Positions 2,445-61,079 are shown, counted from the stretch's first letter. The stretch: 64,000 nucleotides of DNA from Diplonema japonicum (GCA_964019335.1 OZ025648.1:682001-746000), one strand, 5' to 3'. Made by a program: numbers and translations. The notes: a model not told the origin generated them from the sequence alone.

Positions 2445-2473
2445 GGTGGGCCGTTGCTAACACTCCCCTATCA
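2445..2473 (+). repeat. Family B 3'-end remnant (a weaker one at about 2905-2945)
   Basis: GGTGGGCCGTTGCTAACACTCCCCTATCA + long T-tract resembles the family B end GGCGGGCCGTTGCTAACCACTTCGTTCCTATCA. Confidence 0.5.
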
Positions 2474-4009
2474 TTTTTTTTTTTTTTTTTTTTTTTGTTG
2501 GTGGGAGGAAGGGGAAGGAAGTAAAAAAAAAAAAAAAAAGGGTGAAAAAAAAAATACAACAAAAATACAGGGGTAACTTTAAAGCTTGCGTCGACGTTTT
2601 TTTTTTTTTTTTTTTGAGGGTGAAAAAAAAAGGTCGCACGAATTTACCACGTTTTTGGCCGTATTTTTTTTTTTTTTAGATGTTTCATCCACAATATATT
2701 AAAGAAGAAGATCTTTTTCTGGTAGACCAGAGTCAAAGTGAGCTTAGAGTTATTATTCCTGTTATGTTGTTTTTCTCAAAAAAAAAATAAATAAATAACG
2801 TTATATCACCTTTGAAAAAGGTTTTTTTTGTGTCAAAGAAAAGAAAAATTGTCTCCGGAAGGCTTTTGGAAAAATAACAGGGAACAACATGGCATCCCCC
2901 ATTTGGCGGGTGTTGCTAGCACTCCCCCCCCTCCATCAAAGCATTTTTTTTTTTAAAAGATGCTGATAGCGATGAATGAAGTTCAAATACCTGTAACTGG
3001 GTTGTGGTTACCTCTCCCCGTTTTTTTTTTTTTTTTTTTTTTTTGTTTTATTGCCCACAGCACCCTACTCATTAGTCTCTCTTTCTCTCCCCGAGGAAAA
3101 AAAAAAATCTCTTTTTTTCAAAAGGAATCCAAAATGCAAGAAAAAAAAATTTAAAAAAAAATGCAAAAAAAAAAAAATTAATTTAAAAAATCTGGAAAAA
3201 GAAAATGCAGTCTCTTTCCCTCCTCCTCCCGCTCTTGAAAAAAAAACCCCCCCAAACTTTACACCCCCACCCCCCCCCCCCCCCCCCCGGAGAGGGAATA
3301 AAAAAAAAGAAAAGAATGCATTACCAACCGGTTTCCATTATCTCTTCTCACATTTTTTTTTCTTCTTCTTCCATTCCCTTTTTTTTTAATCCCCGAACTG
3401 CACTTAGAATAAGCTGAAAGGCCCTATTTACACTCAAGCTTTTAAGCTAGTGGTTCACCAGTTCCTCCCCTTCAGAGTTATGAAACTATCTATGTGATAC
3501 CCTTTGCGGTAAGAGTGTTGGTGCAAAAGGAATCACTCCACGCACCAACATCCTTTTTGTACACTGTGCCACTTTCTTGTTACACACACCCCTTTTATTC
3601 CTCCCTCTTTTTTTTTTCTTCTCTTGCCTCTCGATTCCCCCTCCCCCCTTTTTTTTTTCCTCTCCTAAGGGATCCACGTTGAGAGGCAACTGTCAGTGCT
3701 GCTGCATTCGAATAAAGGCGAACATACAGGGCAAGCAGTTCAGCAGTGCATCCCATGGAGTCTCCTTTGGCCTTGTCGTTGCGCCCTGGTATGGAAAGGG
3801 GTCTGGATTCTCAGTGCCCTCAGCACAATACCTTTCTCCCTTTCCCTGCAGTGCGCGCTTCTTCTTCTTTTTCTTTTTTTTTTTCTCCTCTTCTTTTTCT
3901 TTTTCTCTTTACGGCCGGGCCTTCTACCCCCCCTCTTTTTTTTGTGTCTTTCCCCTCCCCCCTCTTTTCTCTGCAACTTCAAACCCTCAAATACAGGAAA
4001 TGTGAGAAC

Positions 4010-47541: not shown

Positions 47542-48171
47542 ATGATCGCTGCAAAGCTCTTCATCAAGGCAGGACTGTCGGTGCTTGTGCTGGTGTTTCT
47601 CATTGTGGTGGTTGCGACACCATCTCTGTACGAGGTTACTCAGCAATCTGCAGGCAGGTACCAGAATAGTGCGGCTGCTTGGAAGATAAAGATGGGTGTC
47701 ACAAAGTCGGAAAAAATACAGGGGCAAAGCCTTTGGGAGCACACCGATGACAACTGCAAAACAAAGCCCCTGCATTCTGGGATGCAGGCTGCTGTGTACA
47801 TCAGTCTTGCAAGCGTCATCGTAGCTGTGCTAGCGACTGTGGGGGGTTACTTCACTGGGAACGGTGTGCTGCGTGTTGTCGGGACTGTCTTTGAAGTGAT
47901 CCAGCTTGTTGGCTTGACCCTCTTCGTTGCTGCTGTGATTGTGTATTTCAAGTTGAAGTTCGACTGCGAGTGGGGGAATTATATCTCTACCTCTCAGATC
48001 TCCGACGGTGGCAGCCTCATCTACGGTTTCTACCTGTCGTGTGCCGCCCTTGTTCTGTCCATTGCCTCTGTGGCCATCCGTCCTGGTACCAACCATCAGG
48101 TTCACGATTCTTCGAAAACCGCGAATTTGAACAATGATATGGAGATGAGGCACACAGTCCACACAGTTTGA
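47542..48171 (+). CDS. Amastin-like/claudin-clan tetraspan membrane protein, family A copy 1
   Basis: About 210 aa with four TM segments, TM1 ending VVVATP, and Cys in both extracellular loops. The canonical amastin signature is not intact. Confidence 0.7.
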   Translation: MIAAKLFIKAGLSVLVLVFLIVVVATPSLYEVTQQSAGRYQNSAAAWKIKMGVTKSEKIQGQSLWEHTDDNCKTKPLHSGMQAAVYISLASVIVAVLATVGGYFTGNGVLRVVGTVFEVIQLVGLTLFVAAVIVYFKLKFDCEWGNYISTSQISDGGSLIYGFYLSCAALVLSIASVAIRPGTNHQVHDSSKTANLNNDMEMRHTVHTV

Positions 48172-48353
48172 AAAAAACCCCCCTTTAAAAAAAAATATTG
48201 TTTGAGGAGAAAGGATTTTTTAATAAAAAAATGTTAATCTCCCTTTCATTTTTTTTTTAAACAGACGAGTGTCTTTTATTTGTTTGGCATGCAGCCTTCG
48301 TCTCAGGGAGCTTGCATGTTCATTTGAGTTTTTTTTGATTTTTTTTTTTTTTT

Positions 48354-48549
48354 GCTGGAACAGGTAAACAAATTTTTGAAAAGAATTGTTATTGCAAAAA
48401 AGAGTAGAGGCAGCTTGCCCGTTTACCCCTACTGTAGGTGAAAACAGCTTGCACAAACAAAAATGGCTTGCGCAGACACGTCGACCCGTCGGAGTTGTCG
48501 GTTATACTATACCCGGAGGGGGCCCGACTTGCACAAACAATCAGCCGAC
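48354..48549 (+). mobile_element. Short element family D, copy 2, inside a T-tract
   Basis: Reverse-complement match to 56691-56799 and direct match to 41805-41970. Absent from the paralogous T-tract downstream of amastin-like A2. Confidence 0.7.
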
Positions 48550-50053: not shown

Positions 50054-50680
50054 ATGGTCGCTGCAAAGCTCTTCATCAAGGCAGGACTGTCGGTGCTTGT
50101 GCTGGTGTTTCTCATTGTGGTGGTTGCGACACCATCTCTGTACGAGGTTACTCAGCAATCGGCAGGCAATTACCAGAGTGGCCTTGATTGGAAGATAAAG
50201 ATGGGTGTCACAAAGTCGGAAAAAGTACGGGGGCAAAGCCTTTGGGAGCACACCGATGACAACTGCAACACAAAGGCCCTGCATTCTGGGATGCAGGCTG
50301 CTGTGTACATCAGTCTTGCAAGCGTCATCGTAGCTGTGCTAGCGACTGTGGGGGGTTACTTCACTGGGAACGGTGTGCTGCGTGTTGTCGGGACTGTCTT
50401 TGAAGTGATCCAGCTTGTTGGCTTGACCCTCTTCGTTGCTGCTGTGATTGTGTATTTCAAGGTGAGGTTCAACTGCCAGTGGGAGAGTTACAACGCTACC
50501 TCTGAGATCTCCGACGGTGGCAGCCTCATCTACGGTTTCTACCTGTCGTGTGCCGCCCTTGTTCTGTCCATTGCCTCTGTGGCCATCCGTCCTGGTACCA
50601 ACCATCAGGTTCACGATTCTTCGAAAACCGCGAATTTGAACAATGATATGGAGATGAGGCACACAGTCCACACAGTTTGA
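50054..50680 (+). CDS. Amastin-like tetraspan protein, family A copy 2
   Basis: Near-identical to 47542-48171 except in the extracellular loops. Confidence 0.7.
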   Translation: MVAAKLFIKAGLSVLVLVFLIVVVATPSLYEVTQQSAGNYQSGLDWKIKMGVTKSEKVRGQSLWEHTDDNCNTKALHSGMQAAVYISLASVIVAVLATVGGYFTGNGVLRVVGTVFEVIQLVGLTLFVAAVIVYFKVRFNCQWESYNATSEISDGGSLIYGFYLSCAALVLSIASVAIRPGTNHQVHDSSKTANLNNDMEMRHTVHTV

Positions 50681-51132: not shown

Positions 51133-51172
<40 letters not shown>

Positions 51173-51176
<4 letters not shown>

Positions 51177-51502
51177 GTGGTGGGGATAACATGAAAATAT
51201 AAGAAAAACATCAGATGTGTTGTTCGCTGTTGACCTCCTCGTCGGTCATCACCGGTAGCGCCCGAGTGGAAGAACGTAGCGCAGATGCTCAGGGTGACGA
51301 ACAGGCAGCAAACTGCACGAGCGCAGAATCTTGGTTACCCGGGACGCACCGGCTGGGGTTGAGCTGTACACCGCACGCATTAAGGACACGACGCGGAACG
51401 CAGAAGAAGCTACTGCTCGGCCGAGGAGCGCCCCCTGTAATCAAGTAGACAGTTCTTGTGCAGGGCGCCGCCAACACCGGCCTCCTTTAACTCATGTATA
51501 TA
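51173..51502 (+). mobile_element. Unclassified GC-rich insertion, possibly a decayed retroelement 3' end
   Basis: Lies between T-tracts and is absent from the paralogous A1 downstream region. It has only weak, broken resemblance to a restriction-like endonuclease tail. Confidence 0.3.
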
Positions 51503-51512
51503 TTTTTTTTTT

Positions 51513-52373
51513 CACAAGGGTTCAGGTGCGACCTGTGTGAATCACCGTACCCGGACACGGTAACCCTACTCCGCCATCAACTCTACGAGTGTGCCTGCGC
51601 ACAGGAAGAGCTAGCACAGGACGGCTTGGAACCACTGCGCAACAGGACAGGATGGCCCCTGTGTCTGGAATTGCACGCGATTCTGCCGAGAGGACATGAC
51701 TTTGCGTACCTAGAGAAGCTGCAACGATACTTAGCCGTGGTGGTTGAGAAACGAGACGTAGAGCTCATGCAGAAGGAGGATGTCAACACACAGCCGCTAC
51801 CGTGGATACGAAATGTGGTAGGTAAGAAATGCCCCGTTCCGATAGCGGGCGAGCTCGAAGGAGTGAGCGGGGTCCTGTCCCAGTACCTGAACCCGCTGCT
51901 ACAATGGTTGTCACAACTGCGCTGGGTGGAGAAGGACACCACCTCGGAGGTGTCGGCGGTGGAACTGGCCATTGACTTCGAATGGACGACCGGAAAGTCT
52001 TTGGGAGGCCTGCTGGAAGATAGGGCGCGCAGAATCAAAGCTCTCATCGTAAAGATAAACACAGCATGCAGGGCACGGAAGAAGCGACGCCCCTTCCTAG
52101 CGGACGAGAGAAAAAGAGTGAAGTCCCTCATCGCCATTGGAGGAAAGGCAGCTATTGGTTTCTCCAGGAGGCCTATTTTCGCCACCCGGTCCACGCACGA
52201 CAAGCTAATGGAATTGAAAGCCGACTACAAGCGGGACCGCATCACACGACTCCGCAAGACGCTCACGGCCTCAATCGGAATGAAAGCAATGCTCCAGAAG
52301 GGGAGTATTAACAGATAGACCCCCCCCTCCCATAGGGCGGCCCTCTAGCGGGGGGCTTGTCCTGTACTTTGAG
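51513..52373 (+). mobile_element. 5'-truncated non-LTR retrotransposon family A, copy 1 (ORF stop 52318), oligo-T tail
   Basis: Open frame with a CCHC-type knuckle CDLC-x11-H-x4-C (CDLCESPYPDTVTLLRHQLYEC), typical of LINE ORF2 C-termini. It shares its 3' end (...CTGTACTTTGAG + Tn) with two other copies that have different 5' truncation points. Confidence 0.8.
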
Positions 52374-53108
52374 TTTTTTTTTTTGCGCACGATCTCCCCT
52401 CCCATGGGTCTATGCTCGGAAAAAAAAAAAAAAAAAAAAAGGGAAACGGATACGGATACGGAAACATTTTCCTTACTTTGGGGCCGTTTCCATAAAGAAT
52501 TTTGAAAATAAGGAAAAGTTTCCTGCCAGCATAGCCCTGGGTGGGGGGGGGGGGGGCGTTAGAATTACCCCCTCCTTTTTTGTCCTTGTTTTCCTTTCCC
52601 CTCTTCAGCTTCTTTCCTCTCTTTTAGTTTGAGTATCCGTTTTAACAAGTACTTCGATTTCTGTATATTAAACCTTGAATAAAAATAAGGGGGTTTTTTT
52701 GCCCCCCCCCCCCCCTCGCAATTAGGCTTTAACGCGATACGAGGAGGGTATTTTGTAATGTTTCCTATTTCTAATGAGGAAGAATGCGATTGCAAAAACC
52801 AATTTTTTTTTTCTTTGCAGATATTTGGGTCCGTTTCAATATAACATTTTTGAGGGCTTCCCGAAGTAACTGGAAGAATTCGCTCGTACCAATAGTGCTT
52901 TTTTTTTTTTTTCTCTTTTTTTTTCTTATGTTCTTTTATTCTTCCCTACCCAACACTAACTCCTTAGAGCAGTTGGGGCCTGCCTTCGATTTTCTCAAAA
53001 AAAAAAAAAAAAGAAAAAAAAAAAAAAACCAACTTATTATTCGATACGGAACATTAAGCATCTCAAAAGGGAAAAAAAGAAAAAGAAACAAAAAAGAAAA
53101 AAAGAAAA

Positions 53109-53752
53109 ATGGCCGGTATTATTAAAATTGCTGCAAAAGGTGTGCTCTCCTTGGTAGCGTTGATCATGCTGGTGGTGGCTATTGCGACGCCATCCCTGTA
53201 CACTTTCGATGGGACGGGGAGTAAGACGGTTGGTTTGGGTATCTTGAAATCCGATAAAGTTGGGACCATTGACGTGTGGGAGCAATATGAGGAACTCTGC
53301 GGCAGTATTAAGACGATGCACACCATTTTGAAAGCCGCAGCTTTTATCAGCTTGGCAGGGGTTATCTGTGGGCTTGGTTCGACGATGGCAGCCTACTTCA
53401 CCGGCAACAGCACGCTTGGCCTTGTTGGCACTATTTCCGAAATTGTTCAAATTATTGGTTTCTCAGTCTCGATTGCAATTGCCCTCCTTATTTCTACCCA
53501 GAGCACGGTTGCGATGGGGGTTTAAAAGCACAGTTTAGTAAAGCTGACGGCAGTGCTCTTGGTTACGGGTTTTACATGCTCTGTGTTGGGCTTGTTCTTG
53601 TCATCGTCAATGTGTGCATCCGTACAGGGTCGAAGGACTCTGCCAACAACTCTGGTAACAACCCCAACCCCAACAACTACCAAAGCTACAACTATGGGGC
53701 ACAGACGAACGCAGCAACACCAGGTGCCGAGATGCAATTTCAGACTGCTTAA
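53109..53752 (+). pseudogene. Amastin-like tetraspan family B copy 1 with a single 1-nt frameshift near 53491 (pseudogene or homopolymer error)
   Basis: Aligns with 57423-58055. Adding one T in TATTTCTAC restores FYPEHGCDGGLKAQFSKADGSALGYGFYMLC...EMQFQTA*. Confidence 0.7.
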
Positions 53753-53798
53753 ATAAAAATAAAAAGAAAGCAAAATGAAATAATTAACTATTTATTTA

Positions 53799-53923
53799 GT
53801 GAATATAGCGTGGTGGCAGTGGTTTTAATGAGTGAGGCAACTTTGTCACGAGCGAAGCGAGTGTTATAACGTTTAATGAGTCAAAACTGCCACCACAAGT
53901 GAAATCATCAATCTTATATTCAC
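53799..53923. mobile_element. Palindromic non-autonomous element (Crypton-like architecture)
   Basis: Nested inverted repeats GTGAATATA/TATATTCAC and GTGGTGGCAGT/ACTGCCACCAC around a central CGAGCGAAGCGAG. Confidence 0.5.
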
Positions 53924-53951
53924 AAAAAATAAAAAAGAATCTTATTTTTTT

Positions 53952-54125
53952 GGCCGAGTGCATTGCTTCTGTGGCCCCTCTCCCTATTTCAATTTCCAAG
54001 CTTTCTTTACCTCTCCACTTTTACTTTCTACGGGGCCACAGGGGACTTGGGAGGCTTCGGGGCGAAGCTTCACAAGGGTGGCCACTGTGCCACATACTGC
54101 ATGGCACCACTGGTATCGAGACAAC
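53952..54125 (+). mobile_element. SINE-like family C, short 5'-truncated copy
   Basis: Matches 49508-49671; T-tracts on both sides. Confidence 0.7.
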
Positions 54126-54368
54126 TTTTTTTTTCTTCTTTTTTTCTTTTGTTACAAAATATTTATCTTTCAAAAAATGATTTTATAACTATATGCAACT
54201 TGTGCCGAGCAAAAAACTTTCGCAGCTTTTTAAAAACCTTTTTTGCTCGTGCGAACAACGAAGACATGTAGTCACAAAGAATTATTTTTTTTATGCGGAG
54301 ACTTTTTTTATCAGGAATAATTATGTATTCTTCTTTTACCCCCCCTCACCTTTCATCATTCTTTTTTT

Positions 54369-55370
54369 GGGTGATCGCCGGAGGGGTCCCCTACCTTAGC
54401 CCGCATGCAGGTACGAGTCAAAGGAGCGTCCCCCTGGCACCAGAAGGAGATGGCACCGAGGAAGACGGGGACAGCATAGACCACGTCCCAACGACGGAAG
54501 TACCACGCACACAAGGGTTCAGGTGTGACCTGTGTGAGTCACCACACCCGGACACGGTAACCTTACTACGCCATCAGCTTTACGAGTGTGCCTGCGCACG
54601 GGACGAGCTGGCACAGGACGGTTTGGAACCGCTGCGCGACAGGACGGGATGGCCCCTGTGTCTTGAGCTACACGCAATACTGCCGAGAGGACATGCCTTT
54701 GCATACCTGGAAAAACTGCAACGATACTTGGCCGTGGTGGTTGAGAAGCGGGACGTGGAGCTCGTGCAGAAGGAGGACGTCAACACACAGCCGCTACCGT
54801 GGGAACGAAATGTAGTAGGAAAGAGATGCCCCGTTCCGATAGCAGGCGAGCTCGAGGGAGTGGGTGGGGTCCTGTCCCAGTACCTGAACCCGCTGCTACA
54901 ATGGTTGTCACAGCTGCGCTGGGTGGAGAAGGACACCGCCTCGGAGGTGTCGGCGGTGGAGCTAGCCATTGACTTCGAATGGACGACCGGTAAATCATTA
55001 GGAGGCCTGCTGGAAGATAGGGCACGCAGAATCAAGGCCCTAATCGTAAAGATAAACGCAGCGTGCAGGGCACGGAAGAAGCGACGCCCCTTCCCAGCGG
55101 ATGAGCAGAAAAGGGTGAAATCCCTCATCGCCATAGGAGGAAAGGCAGCTATAGGCTTCTCCAGGAGGCCCATTTTTGCTACCCAGTCCACGCACGACAA
55201 GCTGATGGATTTGAAGGCCGCCTACAAGCGGGATCGCATCACACGACTCCGCAAGACGCTCACAGCCACAATCGGGATGAAAGCAATGCTCCAGAAGGGG
55301 AGTATTAACAGATAGACCCCCCCCTCCCATAGGGCGGCCCTCTAGCGGGGGGCTTGTCCTGTACTTTGAG
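54369..55370 (+). mobile_element. 5'-truncated non-LTR retrotransposon family A, copy 2 (ORF stop 55315)
   Basis: Homologous to copy 1 with many synonymous differences and an intact frame. It extends ~140 nt further 5'. T7 precedes it and T9 follows. Confidence 0.8.
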
Positions 55371-55379
55371 TTTTTTTTT

Positions 55380-55466
55380 CAGGGAACGCCCCCAAAAGGG
55401 GAGCATCATAAGGTTGGCACGCCGCCGCGGCGGGCCGTTGCTAACCACTTCGTTCATTACAGTGAA
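55380..55466 (+). mobile_element. Retroposon family B, extreme 3' fragment inserted at the T-tail of family A copy 2
   Basis: Near-identical to 60991-61079. Confidence 0.75.
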
Positions 55467-55527
55467 TTTTGTGTTGTGACAATCGTTTATGCCGTTTCTT
55501 TTTTATCCCCTTTCTTTTTTATACAAA

Positions 55528-55563
<36 letters not shown>

Positions 55564-55623
55564 CCTTTTTTTTTTGTTACAAATATATTTATCTTTCAAA
55601 AAAAAAAAAAGATTTTATAACTA

Positions 55624-55859
55624 CCGTATTTGTATTTATTTGTTCCGTTTTTAATAATGGTCGTGTAAATTTAATGTACTGTATAGATTATGTACCTTTT
55701 TCGGATTTTGGACGCGACTTGGGACTTTTTACAGAACAAAATGCAAAAATTCTTTTTAGGCCCCGCCTCCCATAAGGCATCCCTCTAGCGGGGGCTTGTC
55801 CCGTACTTTGAGTTTTTATTTTTTTTTTACATAACATAACAAAATAAGTACAAATCCGG
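55624..55859. mobile_element. Tc1/mariner/pogo-type MITE with TA target-site duplication
   Basis: TA|CCGTATTTGTATTTATTTGTT ... AACAAAATAAGTACAAATCCGG|TA. The empty site AAC-TA-TATGCAAC is present in the paralogous block at 54187-54199. Confidence 0.85.
55758..55812 (+). mobile_element. Retroposon family A 3'-UTR-only fragment nested in the MITE
   Basis: CCTCCCATAAGGC..CCCTCTAGCGGGGGCTTGTCCCGTACTTTGAG + T-tract. Confidence 0.7.
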
Positions 55860-56209
55860 TATATGCAACTTGTGCCGAGCAAAAATTTTCGCAGCATTTT
55901 GAAAACCTTTTTTGCTCGTGCGAACAACAAAGACATGTAGTCATAAAGAATTATTCTTCCCTTTTTTCTCTCTTGAGAAGTGAACACTTCTCTGCGTACT
56001 GAAATTTTATCGAATTCTTTTCCCCCTTCTCCTTCCCCTTCTTTAAAGGGCTCAAGTGCTTGTGCGCACCGGGAAAAAAAAAAAAAAAAGAAAAAGAAAA
56101 CAAAGATATTGCCCGTGATAAATCTTTTTTTCTTCTCGTCCTTTTCTTCCTCTCTTCTCCCCGTATTTACAGAAAGGGAATAAAAAAGAAGAAAAAAAAA
56201 GGGGGGGGA

Positions 56210-56797
56210 AAGCAACACCTTATCGAGGGTGGAGCCGTTTTTTTCCCTTTTTTTTTCTCTTTTTTTTCTTCCCATATCTTCCCTTTTGTTTTGTTCTCCC
56301 AGAAAACTGGAGGCGAAGGCCCCTTGCTTTTCCTTCTTCCCAAGGAAGAAAAAGCAATAATTGGCTAATTTACCTACCAACCGAAAATATAGCGGTAAAA
56401 GTAGTCTTGTTTCGCAAACCCGTCGCCCTTTCCTCATTTTTCTTCTTCTTCTTTTTTTCTTTCTCATTATTCGCAAAAGAAAAAGAAAAATGGGGAGGGG
56501 AACATGGTACCAGTTAATGAAACATGGGGAAAACCAAACCTGAAACATGAAGTGGGGAAAAAAAAATACAAAAAAAACAAAAAAAATCGAATGTTGTTTT
56601 TGTTTTGTATAAATTCCCTTTGCTAACTCACTGTTTGTCTTACTTTGTTTCTCCCCCAATACAAACAAAAAAAAAAAGAAAAAGAAAAAGAGTCGGTTGA
56701 TTGTTTGTGCACAGACGGGCTTAACCTGTAGAAGGATAAGCCACTACTCTTTTTAGCAATAACAATTCATTATCAATATATTGGTTTTCTTGTTCAT

Positions 56798-56838
<41 letters not shown>

Positions 56839-56960
56839 AGAACAGTGCGAATCAGAGCAAATAAGAATGCTGTAGTTCGCAATATGAAAGGCCACCACCA
56901 CCACCACCACCACTACCACTTTGTTTCATGATAAACAGAAACGCTTGATGTTTTATTCGA
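56210..56960 (+). repeat. Duplicated intergenic/UTR block (paralog at about 58470-59310)
   Basis: Shared anchors AACTGGAGGCGAAG, AAAGCAATAATT, TTGCTAACTCACTGTTTGTCTTACTTT, and GAGCAAATAAGAATGCTGTAGTTCGCAATATGAAAGGC. Confidence 0.8.
56691..56799 (-). mobile_element. Short element family D, copy 3, inverted, inside an A-tract
   Basis: Reverse complement of the ends of 48354-48549. The paralogous site at about 59173-59200 is an A-rich tract without the element. Confidence 0.75.
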
Positions 56961-57422
56961 TTTCCGTTCTCCACCTAGCCCTCTGGGAAAGGGGGACCTC
57001 TTCCGCTTGCTTTTTTTTTTCTCCCTCCCCTTCTTTTATACTATTTTTTGTGTTTGTTACAATGGAAGCCCTTTACCGGGGGGGGGGGGGGGGGGGGGAG
57101 GACATCTGTTCAGTTGTCAGGGGGGGTAATTGATTTTTCGAAATTTGACATGATTGCCACCTTCCTCCAATGTGGCTTCCATCGGCTAGCCTATGCGGTT
57201 ATCCTCTTCCCCCCACACAGAACAGCGGGGGGCTGAAGACGTTTTGAGCACTTTGAAAGCTAAGGGCCTAATTCGGGCATTTAAAAACCTGGGAGTTGAC
57301 TTTGAGCATTTCTAAAACTTAGGGGTCAAGTAAGCACTCCACCCCAAAAAAAAAAAGAAAGAAAAAAAAAAGTTCTTACATTTTTATTTCACTCTCTTTC
57401 TCAAAAAAAAAAAAAAAAGAAA

Positions 57423-58055
57423 ATGGCCGGTATTATTAACATTGCTGCAAAAGGTGTGCTCTCCTTGGTAGCGTTGATCATGCTGGTGGTGGCTATTGCG
57501 ACGCCATCCCTGTACACTTTTGATGCGGGAAAGACGGTAGGTATGGGTATCTTGAAATCCGATAAAGTTGGGACCATTGACATATGGGAGCAATATGAGG
57601 AACTCTGCAGCGATATTAAGACGATGCACACCATTTTGAAAGCCGCAGCTTTTATCAGCTTGGCAGGGGTTATCTGTGGGCTTGGTTCGACGATGGCAGC
57701 CTACTTCACCGGCAACAGCACACTCGGCCTTGTTGGCACTATTTTCGAAGTTGTTCAAATTGTTGGTTTCTCGGCCTCGATTGCAGTTGCTCTCCTTATA
57801 TACCTCCCGGAACACAGTTGCGATGGGGAATTAAAAATAAAGCTTAGTGACGGTAAAGGAAGTGCTCTCGGTTTCGGGTTTTACATGCTCTGTGTTGGGC
57901 TTGTTCTTGTCCTCATCAATGTGTGCGTCCGTGCAGGGTCGAAGGACTCCGCCAACATCAACAACAACAACAACAACTACCAAAGCTACAACGATGGGGC
58001 ACAGACGAACACTGCACAGGGCGGCACCGAGATGCAATATCACCAGACTGTTTAA
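57423..58055 (+). CDS. Amastin-like tetraspan protein, family B copy 2
   Basis: Four TM segments and VVAIATPSLY. AAAFISLA and YFTGN are shared with family A. Confidence 0.7.
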   Translation: MAGIINIAAKGVLSLVALIMLVVAIATPSLYTFDAGKTVGMGILKSDKVGTIDIWEQYEELCSDIKTMHTILKAAAFISLAGVICGLGSTMAAYFTGNSTLGLVGTIFEVVQIVGFSASIAVALLIYLPEHSCDGELKIKLSDGKGSALGFGFYMLCVGLVLVLINVCVRAGSKDSANINNNNNNYQSYNDGAQTNTAQGGTEMQYHQTV

Positions 58056-59436
58056 GTAAAAAGAAAGAGAGAAGAGGGGGAAGATTTTTTTTTTTCGTTA
58101 TTAGGAATTTGTATTCTTTTCACCCCCCTCCCCTTTCATCATAGTAATTTTTTTTGTAATACTAAAAAACCCTTTTTTTTTCGATTTACCAGTGTGGGTA
58201 AGGGTTTTTTTTTTGGTGTCTCTTTTTTTTTCCCCGTAATAGTTCTTTTTTTTTTCTTCTCGTTCTTTTCTTCCTCTCCCCCCCCCCCCCGTTTTTCTTC
58301 TCTCTCTCCTCTTTTTTTTCCCCTTCGCTAGCTGTAGTTACAGAAGAGTTGAACGAACAAAAGCAAGGAAAGAAAAGAAAAATACCCCCTCCCCCGTTGT
58401 CGCCCTTTTATTGTTCGAGAAAAAGGAGTCCAAAAAATAAGCACGCTCGCCCTTCCTCCTGGGAAAAAAAGAGCAACATCTTTTCGGGGGGGGGGGGGGT
58501 GAAGCCGTTTTTTTCAATGTCCCTTTTTTTTCTCCCAGTCCTCGTTCTTTTTCTCCCCCTTTTTTTTGTTCTCCCAAACTGGAGGCGAAGTCCCAGCAAT
58601 CGCCCCTGCTTTTTTTCCTTTTTTTTTTCCTTTTTTTTTTTTAAAAAAAAAGCAATAATTAGCTTATTTATTTACCAACCCGAAAAAAGAGTTGAATAAT
58701 GCCACAGCTTGGCGGTAAGTAAGTAGTCTTATTTCACCCTTTCGTCATCTTTTTTTTTTTCTTGGGCCGCTCATTGTTGCTCTCATTACTATGGTCCACA
58801 ATAACCAAAGAAAATACGTCCAGAAAAGATTTTTTCAAAAGGAGTTGGTGTTTTCCACAATAGAAACTGTGCAAGTAATGGCCCAGGGAGGAATCGTGTC
58901 CAAGAATTCCTCCACCACTCTGAGTCCACTTTAGAAAATTGACGAGGGGCGCGAAGAAAAAAAAAAAAAAAAACTGTACCACTAAAACATGGGGGGAAAA
59001 AATACAAAACAAAAATAGACAAAAAAATCTTTGCTTCAAAAACAAAAAAAAAGAAAGTAGCTGAACACTTGTTTTTTTTTTTTCTTTTTTTTTTTCGTTT
59101 CCTAACTTTTTTTATTATTATTATAATCCCCTTGCTAACTCACTGTTTGTCTTACTTTATTATCCCTCATTTAAGAAAAAAAAAAGAAAAAAAAAAAAAC
59201 ACTCAAGAAAGTGCGAATCCGAGCAAATAAGAATGCTGTAGTTCGCAATATGAAAGGCACACCATCACCACCTTGTTTCATGATGAACAGAACGCTTGAT
59301 ATTTTTATTCTATTTTATTTGTTTTATTTCCCCGTTCGATTTTCCCCTTCTCTCTCTCCCCCTGCTTTACAACACACCTTTCTCTCGGAAATCACTGTTT
59401 TCTTAGTATCTTTGGAAAGGAAGAAAGACGGGAAAG

Positions 59437-59476
<40 letters not shown>

Positions 59477-59881
59477 ATCTTTTTTTGTTTCTCCAGATCT
59501 AAGAAAAAAACGTGAATTGGGTCAAGATATCCCCTTCCTTTTTATTTTTTTTTAATCCTGAGTTGACTTGGAGCGTGTGAAAGCCACGTAGTGTAACCCA
59601 TCTTCGCCATAAAGTGGAAATGGGATGCCACTGCTACACCACAGTCAGAACTTTTAGTAATCGGTGCTCGATATTTTTTTGAGCTTTCCGCTCCCCAACA
59701 GGGATACCCTTTCTTTGAAGTTCCCCCCCCTTTCCCATAAAAAAGAAGCTTTCCCCCACCTCGTTACTTCTTCTTTTTTTGTGATGCTTCCCCCCCCCCC
59801 CCCCCTCCTTTCTTTTCGTTTTTTTTTCCTCTTTTTTTTTTCCCCCCTTCCCCACCGTGGTTCACATTAAGGTTTTTGGAT

Positions 59882-60649
59882 ATGAGTCTGTTCGATGCGG
59901 TGTCGCAAAAATGCAAAGAAGTAGGCCTGCGAAAAAAAGCCTTGGGGTCCGAGCACGTAGATGGTGAAGAGGCTGGCGAACGAGCATTGGTAGAAGCGGT
60001 TGTCAACGGAGATGAAAGGAAGGTGGAGAGGGTGCTGCTTGCAGGTATTGATGCGGACCTTACTGTGGGCGGTGAGCCTATATTACATATTGCAGCCGCG
60101 GATGGGTTTGTGAAAGTGGTGCAAAGCCTGATCAGGTTGGGGGCTACTGTGGACCAACGATGCGCCGATAATAAAAATCGGACAGCTCTTCATGCAGCAG
60201 CAGTCCACAACCATGAAGTGGTGGTCGCGCAGCTTGTGCTGAGCGGGGCGGAAGTAGATGCGAGAGACACCAACGGACAGACACCCCTGCACTTAGCAGC
60301 CTCGCGGAGTTATAAGCCGCTGTGCAACTACCTCATCAGTAAAGGTGCTTCCATCAGAGTGGCCGACGTCTTCAACTATACCCCAACAGAGCTCATGCTC
60401 GAGTCGTTGCAGCACCCCGCCGTCGAAACTACCATTACGAGGACTGCCGTGTCCGCCACGCACCTCCGAGACCTCTTTTTTCACCACTCCCAAGGGAAGG
60501 ACCGTCTTTCTAAGGACAAGTTCGTTGAAATCCTGAGCGAGATCGACCATATGAGCCTCCCGTGCAGGCCGCCGGTATGGCAGGACAACGTTGAGACAAT
60601 CGGATTGCAAGAGTTCGCCATCGAAGCACTGAAGGTGGCACAATGGTGA
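59882..60649 (+). CDS. Ankyrin-repeat protein
   Basis: PILHIAAADG, RTALHAAAVHN, and GQTPLHLAASRS repeats. Confidence 0.9.
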   Translation: MSLFDAVSQKCKEVGLRKKALGSEHVDGEEAGERALVEAVVNGDERKVERVLLAGIDADLTVGGEPILHIAAADGFVKVVQSLIRLGATVDQRCADNKNRTALHAAAVHNHEVVVAQLVLSGAEVDARDTNGQTPLHLAASRSYKPLCNYLISKGASIRVADVFNYTPTELMLESLQHPAVETTITRTAVSATHLRDLFFHHSQGKDRLSKDKFVEILSEIDHMSLPCRPPVWQDNVETIGLQEFAIEALKVAQW

Positions 60650-60660
60650 CGAACGGGTGA

Positions 60661-60693
<33 letters not shown>

Positions 60694-60738
60694 TTCCAGT
60701 TTTTTTTTTTTTTTTTTTTTTCTTTTTTTTTTTTTTTT

Positions 60739-61079
60739 GAGGATCAAGCGGATCCTGGATACGCTGCAAGCGACATGGATGAGGGAGAAGAGGAGACGCG
60801 CTTTTCCGGCGCAGTCATGCAAGAACGTGAGATCACTACGATCCATTGGCCGCGACCACGTCGTTGGCTTTGATAGGAGGGCCCTGTTTGCATCGGGGCT
60901 GACGGCGACCAAGCTGAAAGGACTGAGAGAAGATTACCGGAAAGAAAGGATTGGAAGATATAAACGACAGCTAGGCACTACGGTGGGTAGCAGGGAACGA
61001 CCCCAAAAGGGGAGCATCATAAGGTAGGCACGCCACCGCGGCGGGCCGTTGCTAACCACTTCGTTCCTATCATAGTGAA
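60739..61079 (+). mobile_element. 5'-truncated retroposon family B (ORF stop 61027), T-tailed
   Basis: The translated RIKRILDTLQ...RRAFPA...VRSLRSIG...GFDRRALFA...QKGSIIR* is homologous to the family A C-terminus (RIKALIVKIN...RRPFPA...VKSLIAIG...GFSRRPIFA...QKGSINR*). Long T-tracts on both sides. Confidence 0.8.

Follow-up and report, generated by a model that had tools for sequence, protein, structure and literature searches.

Non-LTR retrotransposons of Diplonema japonicum inserted in coding-strand T-tracts and co-oriented with the surrounding genes

We describe two related families of long interspersed nuclear elements (LINEs), A and B, found in a 64,000-nt stretch of the genome of the diplonemid Diplonema japonicum (positions 682001–746000 of contig 1 in an assembly of 62.5 Mb and 132 contigs; hereafter, the window). 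Comparison of their copies shows that integration is specific to long oligo(T) tracts of the coding strand and co-directional with the surrounding polycistronic genes. From these sequence comparisons, we consider it rather probable that the elements are LINEs specific for sense-strand T-tracts whose reverse transcription is primed from the A-strand, with probable pairing of the primer to a U-run in the read-through transcript.

Genes in the window lie nearly all on the + strand, with no obvious introns and with homopolymer-rich spacers in between, a layout that fits a polycistronic, trans-spliced gene organization. Genome-wide tallies of 3′ ends given here are exact pattern counts (an 18-mer end for family A, a 26-mer end for family B and the terminal 15-mer for a third family, C), details of flanks and junctions come from 30 retrieved family A loci and background rates of T-runs from a 271-kb sample. 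Runs of T, A, C and G were tallied from a threshold of at least 8 bases. All of the A and B copies reported in a preliminary description of the window, together with a B-like remnant at 2445, were found at their positions on the + strand (Table 1).

Element 3′ ends

Across the genome, 244 family A 3′ ends were detected, with T as the next base in 234 and TTTT in 184, a tetramer that starts with a probability of 0.023 per position in the background sample (P about 1e-245). The 10 ends followed by another base comprise four in which a T-run begins after 1–2 extra bases and six that belong to one duplicated AT-rich array on contig 56. A poly(A) tail follows none of the 244 ends. Family B gives the same picture, with TTT next in 207 ends and a non-T base next in 10 (7 A and 3 C; the next base alone was read). 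The preliminary description had the copies followed by T's and devoid of poly(A), and this genome-wide tabulation of both families agrees. The six family A ends on contig 56 (G000:C56:197641-241777) share the same AT-rich continuation and alternate between spacings of ~7 and ~10 kb, which looks like a tandemly duplicated block with two A copies per unit.

The boundary between element and T-run is sharp. In the 30 retrieved loci, A copies that keep their 3′ end differ in start point but terminate in ...GTCCTGTACTTTGAG and continue with 2–34 T. Just 2 of about 246 A ends lack the final GAG, corresponding to a start on the internal UUU ahead of it. Reverse transcription starts at one exact nucleotide per family (...GAG in A, ...GTGAA in B). 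The possibility that the T-run is the poly(A) tail of an element on the other strand was ruled out, as the fixed end, the open reading frame (ORF) and the spliced-leader head described below all lie on the strand of the T-run.

T-runs at the 5′ junction, target duplication and stacking

The 5′ junction could be mapped in 22 truncated A copies, 17 of which abut a T-run of 7–32, with three more separated from such a run by 1–3 bases. At least 7 preceding T's occur with a frequency of 0.010 in the background sample, giving a P of about 5e-30 for 17/22. The earlier assertion that every copy has a T-run on both sides is therefore true of most truncated copies, but not of all elements: full-length copies are headed by a spliced leader and do not always directly follow a T-run, and the B fragment at 55380 has just 4 T after it.

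No target duplication with bases other than T was found in the 22 truncated A copies, even where the downstream run has just 5–6 T. Therefore, any duplication must be very short or consist of T only. The flanks of these copies have only T's in common, and a T-only duplication and a split tract look alike. T-runs average 14.0 upstream and 11.8 downstream. Added together, the flanks of a copy come to 25.8 T on average and to no fewer than 15, whereas length-proportional insertion among runs of at least 8 would predict 16.5. Since the flank sums exceed this expectation, the elements either favour long tracts or add about 5–10 T per event, and the data fit either. Microhomology at the 5′ junction was not apparent in the 17 copies abutting a run, 4 of which begin with T, about the background level.

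Elements are stacked within one another's T-runs. The arrangement C-T-A was found three times, and A-T-B, A-T-A′ and A-T-F were also encountered. In the window, A copy 1 is inserted in the T-run downstream of the C copy. In addition, two paralogous spacers of a membrane-protein gene array in the window have been struck at the same tract by different families, by element E (48354–48549) in one and by C and A copy 1 in the next. One of these spacers was considered as an empty site for the other and rejected, given that element E sits at the same tract, and no empty site was found. No 3′ transduction was detected among 30 downstream flanks, in which the pieces in common proved to be other truncated elements.

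Orientation relative to host genes

An ORF of at least 200 aa flanks the element in 24 loci, and in every one of them the ORFs lie on the element strand. The flanking ORFs that were tested are host genes, encoding Tsr1, a VPS9/MORN protein, adenylate cyclases and a BspA-like leucine-rich repeat protein, and families A and B are oriented alike over long stretches of contigs. On its sense strand, the window contains 129 T-runs and 106 A-runs, about equal numbers. A choice of A/T tracts that was blind to the strand would leave about half of the insertions antisense, which means either that targeting is linked with the direction in which transcription or replication proceeds, or that antisense inserts are quickly removed.

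According to the latter explanation, the endonuclease would strike A/T tracts on either strand and selection would eliminate the antisense inserts, for example, through antisense RNA or RNA interference (RNAi) within polycistrons. We regard this as a serious possibility, though we lean against it. A- and T-runs are equally available in the sense strand and yet every locus is in sense, as this explanation can accommodate, and RNAi machinery is present in Diplonema papillatum (PMC10161547). On the other hand, A copies are often 99.5–100% identical, so that every antisense insert would have to disappear within a short time, and both the complete lack of antisense copies in 24 loci and the block-wise orientation of the two families across contigs speak against it.

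Families A and B are LINEs

By walking upstream from longer copies, full-length family A elements of ~6.8 kb were reached at two loci, L042 and L039. A further locus, L034, encodes on the same strand an uninterrupted ORF2 of 1326 aa with Exo_endo_phos, RVT_1 and a CX2CX12HX4C motif, and its C-terminal peptide is the one encoded in the window, where the ORF of A copy 2 matches it. The Pfam scan identified an apurinic/apyrimidinic endonuclease (APE) of the Exo_endo_phos family (E-value 2.9e-10 in L042 and 1.3e-06 in L034) and a reverse transcriptase (RT) of the non-LTR type (RVT_1, 1.6e-22 in the L034 ORF2), and gave no RNase H match in the family A ORF2. The nearest solved structures in the PDB are those of L1 ORF2p and R2 (E-values from 1e-15 to 4e-10). 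Upstream of ORF2 lies an ORF1 of 772 aa, in which a coiled-coil signal is the sole feature. The end of the family B ORF is 41% identical to the C-terminus of the family A ORF2 (E-value 2e-19).

Among named proteins, the closest relatives of the RT come from Diplonema papillatum (40–47% identity), and there are hundreds of diplonemid relatives, among which transcriptome contigs reach 94% identity. More than 40 genomic A copies show 90–100% identity to the window copy at 54369–55370, many of them at 99.5–100%, and the retrieved loci have more than 20 distinct 5′ truncation points and a single 3′ end. Families A and B are young APE-endonuclease LINEs and are probably still active. A metagenome scan recovered 20 distant loci, with 24–51% identity in the best segment; most of those examined are frame-broken or incomplete, and as no T- or A-run was seen near their ORF ends, they are uninformative on tails.

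These results bear out the initial proposal of LINE-like elements with an ORF2-like C-terminus, a zinc knuckle in family A, a fixed 3′ end and variable 5′ truncation, and in the recovered full-length copies and the intact ORF2, RT and APE endonuclease are encoded in the same direction as the ORF first seen. A-tails, flanks no richer in T than the background, lack of an RT and an orientation opposite to that ORF had been named as outcomes contrary to the proposal, and none of them was observed.

Spliced-leader heads

Full-length A copies start with a 37–39-nt spliced leader (L042, corresponding to G000:C77, and L039, corresponding to G000:C11). Two different acceptor positions have been used for the leader, L039 having 31 extra nt, and in another locus (L019:498-534) it is fused to an internal point of the element, at about reference position 3134. 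Because full-length copies carry the leader at their 5′ end, the template of retrotransposition was trans-spliced sense RNA of the mature type, and the different junctions in L042, L039 and L019 indicate that differently trans-spliced RNAs have all been copied back to DNA.

The 9-mer CTGTACTTT occurs both in the terminal 13 nt of family A (CCTGTACTTTGAG; window 55357–55370) and in the 3′ portion of the spliced leader (…CTGTACTTTATTG), and families B and C do not contain it. This may be due to chance or be a relic of template switching.

Insertion mechanism

Given the established target-primed reverse transcription (TPRT) geometry, an insert in sense orientation between T's points to priming from the A-strand. 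The endonuclease would nick this strand, which is the template strand of transcription, inside the tract, and the resulting oligo(dA) 3′-OH would prime first-strand synthesis. As every copy has a T-run downstream, the primer would most likely pair with the U-run immediately downstream of the element in the element's own read-through RNA. Such pairing would set the GAG|T boundary sharply even if the RNA had no defined end, yield T-runs of variable length and account for the missing poly(A). It would resemble the guidance of R1 and TRAS by read-through target sequence and that of L1 and Zorro3 by poly(A), and similar ideas have been published for RTE-related elements (PMC6007223) and for Zorro3 and L1 (PMC3956500). 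Retention of a polypyrimidine tract on both sides would suggest that the element could itself be trans-spliced and that the acceptor tract of the gene downstream could be preserved. Non-autonomous partners, such as C, E and others, ride along with A and B.

Several points weigh against A-strand priming on a read-through U-run. Upstream and downstream T-runs are about equally long and templated T's are not required, the flank statistics being compatible with templated T's and with target T's alike. Starts on the internal UUU are very rare, and A:U pairing alone, therefore, does not set the start. Read-through templates might give some 3′ transduction, which none of the 30 copies shows. Finally, the sense bias could stem from selection and not from the mechanism.

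Some of these points would be explained by a tail-less, structure-guided start of the ‘stringent’ R2-like kind, in which a ribonucleoprotein reads the GC-rich hairpin of the 3′ untranslated region (UTR) and begins at the last element nucleotide without primer pairing. The template would then contain no U-run, and all T's would be target sequence supplied by a T-tract-specific endonuclease. We treat this explanation, the main rival to pairing, as tentative. The boundary is as exact as it predicts (234 ends with T and 10 near T, as opposed to two without GAG), the T-runs are symmetric, 3′ transduction was not seen and each family has a hairpin and then a short single-stranded end before the T-run. 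The support from folding is weak, however, with z-scores of −0.7 to −2.0, and the ~9-T excess in the flank sums would have to be put down to a strong preference for long tracts. Moreover, the RNA would need to end at GAG within polycistronic, polyadenylated transcription, and no route to such an end is evident.

A third source of the T's might be a post-transcriptional oligo(U) tail copied as a T tail, an exact mirror of poly(A). The varying T length after a fixed end would fit, and Euglenozoa are rich in terminal uridylyl transferases. Nevertheless, the downstream run is not longer than the upstream run, a 3′ tail cannot yield an upstream run and the elements have no uridylation-linked feature, and we consider this origin very improbable.

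The pairing of an A-strand primer with a read-through U-run may also be part of something broader, namely, a mirror-image form of TPRT used by a whole guild of elements (A, B, C, E and others). Here, nicked template-strand oligo(dA) would pair with oligo(U) in the template RNA, coupling to transcription or replication would enforce orientation, and insertion would be wired to trans-splicing signals. This wider proposal is speculative and, in our judgement, holds less promise than the reading for A and B themselves. If true, each insertion would regenerate a polypyrimidine tract on both sides, gain its own spliced leader and spare the downstream acceptor.

Do the elements create the homopolymer tracts?

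According to the initial suggestion, the elements may contribute to the homopolymer-rich DNA between genes. T's would be added at each insertion, either as a templated tail or through a target duplication made up of T only, and such DNA would thereby be seeded. The excess in the flank sums described above would agree with this, as would the multi-element chains that total 60–75 T, and of the 45 longest T-runs of the 271-kb sample, about eight come, on inspection of their flanks, after recognisable element 3′ ends. However, only about 31 of the 477 T-runs of at least 8 in this sample are preceded by a recognisable repeated 3′ end, and runs of 40–55 T occur without recognisable elements. In the sense strand, A-runs are also as frequent and long as T-runs, as the window counts illustrate; since all elements are in sense and flanked by T, they cannot explain the A-runs. 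The suggestion is thus poorly supported, and we find it unlikely that the elements are a source of the tracts.

Comparison with known systems

Retroposons ending in T have been described in plants. In grasses, 26 of 61 families of short interspersed nuclear elements (SINEs) carry a poly-T tail (PMC5585668), and Au-like SINEs end in a T stretch, while their plant RTE LINE partners end in (GTT)n and generate T-initiated target duplications near T stretches (PMC6007223). The preliminary contrast with TPRT elements that leave only A-tails or short tandem repeats was, therefore, overstated. For the Au-like/RTE elements, a model has been published in which a U-rich 3′ end pairs with, or guides cleavage of, the A-containing strand (PMC6007223). 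Zorro3, an L1-clade element of Candida albicans, is specific for poly-A tracts, with the tract on both flanks and no visible ordinary duplication (PMC3956500). Pairing between the 3′ end of a template and its target thus has precedent (PMC6007223, PMC3956500).

Family A resembles Zorro3 in being an autonomous two-ORF LINE of the APE type that targets a homopolymer tract, which flanks both ends, without ordinary target duplication (PMC3956500). In Zorro3, however, tract and tail are A on the sense strand and the T-strand primer pairs with poly(A), whereas here T's flank the element on its sense strand, the primer would be the A-strand and poly(A) would be unusable; neither poly-A flanks nor an A-tail of the Zorro3 kind is present. 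Furthermore, Zorro3 has zinc knuckles in ORF1, in contrast to the coiled coil alone in the family A ORF1, and strict gene co-orientation and a spliced-leader head are not known from Zorro3. With regard to L1-clade membership, human ORF2p is a distant PDB match.

The Au-like SINE/RTE system is comparable in that its retroposons end in a T stretch (SINEs) or (GTT)n (LINEs) and make target duplications that begin with T beside a T stretch (PMC6007223). In that system, the pure T end belongs to RNA polymerase III SINEs, and the RTE LINEs end in a microsatellite and produce normal duplications ~10 nt from the T stretch. Here, by contrast, two-ORF autonomous LINEs of 6.8 kb end directly in oligo(T), inside the tract and with no non-T duplication; T abuts both insert ends, unlike the RTE-type duplication ~10 nt downstream of the stretch. 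Autonomous RTE LINEs have a single ORF and measure about 3–4 kb, and the length of family A, its 772-aa ORF1 and the C2HC motif in its ORF2 set it apart from that clade.

R1, TRAS/SART, Waldo, Mino, Kibi and Koshi are similar in having a repeated target and a fixed orientation, and in that downstream target sequence in the transcript may anneal to the nicked strand and set the exact start. The targets of R1, TRAS/SART and the microsatellite-specific LINEs are ribosomal DNA, telomeric repeats or di- and trinucleotide repeats, and many of these elements are still A-tailed. We know of no earlier description of a T-homopolymer target linked to the coding strand. For R1Bm, a role of read-through target sequence in priming is mentioned as a cited result in PMC6007223.

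Among the non-LTR elements of Euglenozoa, ingi/L1Tc and CRE/SLACS are the nearest points of comparison, ingi being of the APE type and CRE/SLACS being associated with the spliced leader. Ingi carries RNase H and Pr77, and CRE/SLACS encode a restriction-like endonuclease and are inserted in spliced-leader genes. Family A has no poly(A), no RNase H by Pfam and a 5′ end formed by the spliced leader, Pr77 itself not having been searched for, and it differs from CRE/SLACS in its APE-type endonuclease and in copies dispersed between ordinary genes. Neither ingi/L1Tc nor CRE/SLACS appeared among the 120 relatives listed. In kinetoplastids, the ingi and CRE elements have poly(A) ends (PMC12278014). 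The genome paper of D. papillatum lists LINE-like genes and defers the characterization of transposable elements (PMC10161547).

We did not find a description of a two-ORF autonomous LINE that ends in pure oligo(T) inside T-tracts, of strict host-gene co-orientation or of the combination of these traits with spliced-leader heads. The elements were first put forward as a candidate for an undescribed system; T-ended retroposons and homopolymer-tract targeting, taken singly, have the precedents given above.

Debate continues over the role that pairing of the RNA 3′ end with the nicked target plays in TPRT, and this role has been studied mostly in A-tailed L1 or in site-specific elements. An autonomous LINE with a T homopolymer as both target and apparent tail offers a natural reciprocal test of whether primer–template pairing or endonuclease specificity determines site and start. 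Co-orientation with genes and the spliced-leader heads tie retrotransposition to the trans-splicing biology of Euglenozoa, and also suggest a ‘safe-haven’ strategy in very gene-dense genomes. With hundreds of copies in each family, according to the exact 3′-end counts, diplonemid genome annotation must recognize these elements, whose ends are missed by tools that consider A-tails only.

Element copies in the window and further T-flanked families

The copies found in the window are listed in Table 1. Further copies of element E were also found after T-runs, in L016 and elsewhere.

Table 1. Retroelement copies and remnants identified in the window
Element	Position	Strand	Characteristics	Flanks and setting
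Family A LINE, copy 1, 5′-truncated	51513–52373	+	Last ~270 ORF2 codons and 55-nt 3′ UTR; end ...CTGTACTTTGAG; 91% identity to A copy 2	Between the T-run after element C (about 51503–51512) and an 11-T run (52374–52384)
Family A LINE, copy 2, 5′-truncated	54369–55370	+	1002 bp; 100% identity to other genomic copies	T7 before (54362–54368), T9 after (55371–55379)
Family A, 3′-terminal remnant	55758–55812	+	55 nt; 89% identity	T5 before, T5-A-T10 after
Family B LINE, 5′-truncated	60739–61079	+	341 bp; last 96 ORF2 codons and 3′ UTR; end ...CATAGTGAA	Within a long T-tract, downstream of the ankyrin gene stop (60649) and upstream of the ATG (61196) of the following gene; T16 after
Family B LINE, 3′ fragment	55380–55466	+	87 nt; 92% to B positions 253–341	Inside the T-run after A copy 2; TTTT after
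B-like 3′ remnant	2445–2473	+	GGGCCGTTGCTAAC common to the B 3′ UTR	23-T run after (2474–2496)
Family C, SINE-like, non-autonomous	51173–51503	+	~335 bp; defined 5′ end; end ...CTCATGTATATAT	39-T run before (51134–51172)
Element E, short	48354–48549	+	196 bp; start GCTGGAACAGG, end ...CAGCCGAC	T15 and T26

The terminal 15-mer of family C has 384 matches in the genome. Among the first 100 listed, ~53 have at least 5 T within 18 nt (counted by eye), 17 lie in a longer repeat and the rest are decayed or end in (AT)n; poly(A) follows none of these 100. The matches in the longer repeat, ~17% of those listed, run on into a fixed ATATTTATCTCCT…, occur in both orientations, are often clustered and in some cases lie near contig starts (contigs 2, 17, 18, 19 and 22). 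Given this fixed continuation, the C 3′ end is also part of a longer repeat, possibly a LINE partner of C or a subtelomeric repeat. Some C copies end in a long (AT)n that extends their own terminal ATATAT, with no T-run (L036:7125-7345; G000:C1:251969; C14:374512), pointing to initiation slippage or to a later expansion of the microsatellite. No Rfam match was obtained for C or for the other elements, and a small-RNA origin of C was set aside.

Besides A, B and C, at least two more families show the same association with T. Clustering of the sequences ahead of runs in the 271-kb sample detected four repeated 3′ ends before T-runs and none before A-runs, the sole A-run cluster being the 5′ end of element E on the opposite strand. 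The upstream flanks of four loci (L003, L024, L027 and L028) contain a repeated 3′ end (…GCGCCAAACTAG) and then T-runs that host A or C insertions, and this end probably represents a further T-flanked family (D).

Neighbouring genes and base composition

The membrane-protein array with the spacers described above consists of small genes for multi-pass membrane proteins in tandem, at window positions 48000–48174, 50054–50680, 53109–53760 and 57423–58055. Its Pfam matches, to Yip1 and amastin, are weak and sub-threshold. The copy at 53109 is broken over two frames, with a 138-aa ORF and the remainder in another frame, as would result from a pseudogene or an assembly indel. In addition, C-runs outnumber G-runs on the sense strand of the window by 31 to 7, in contrast to the near-equal T- and A-runs.

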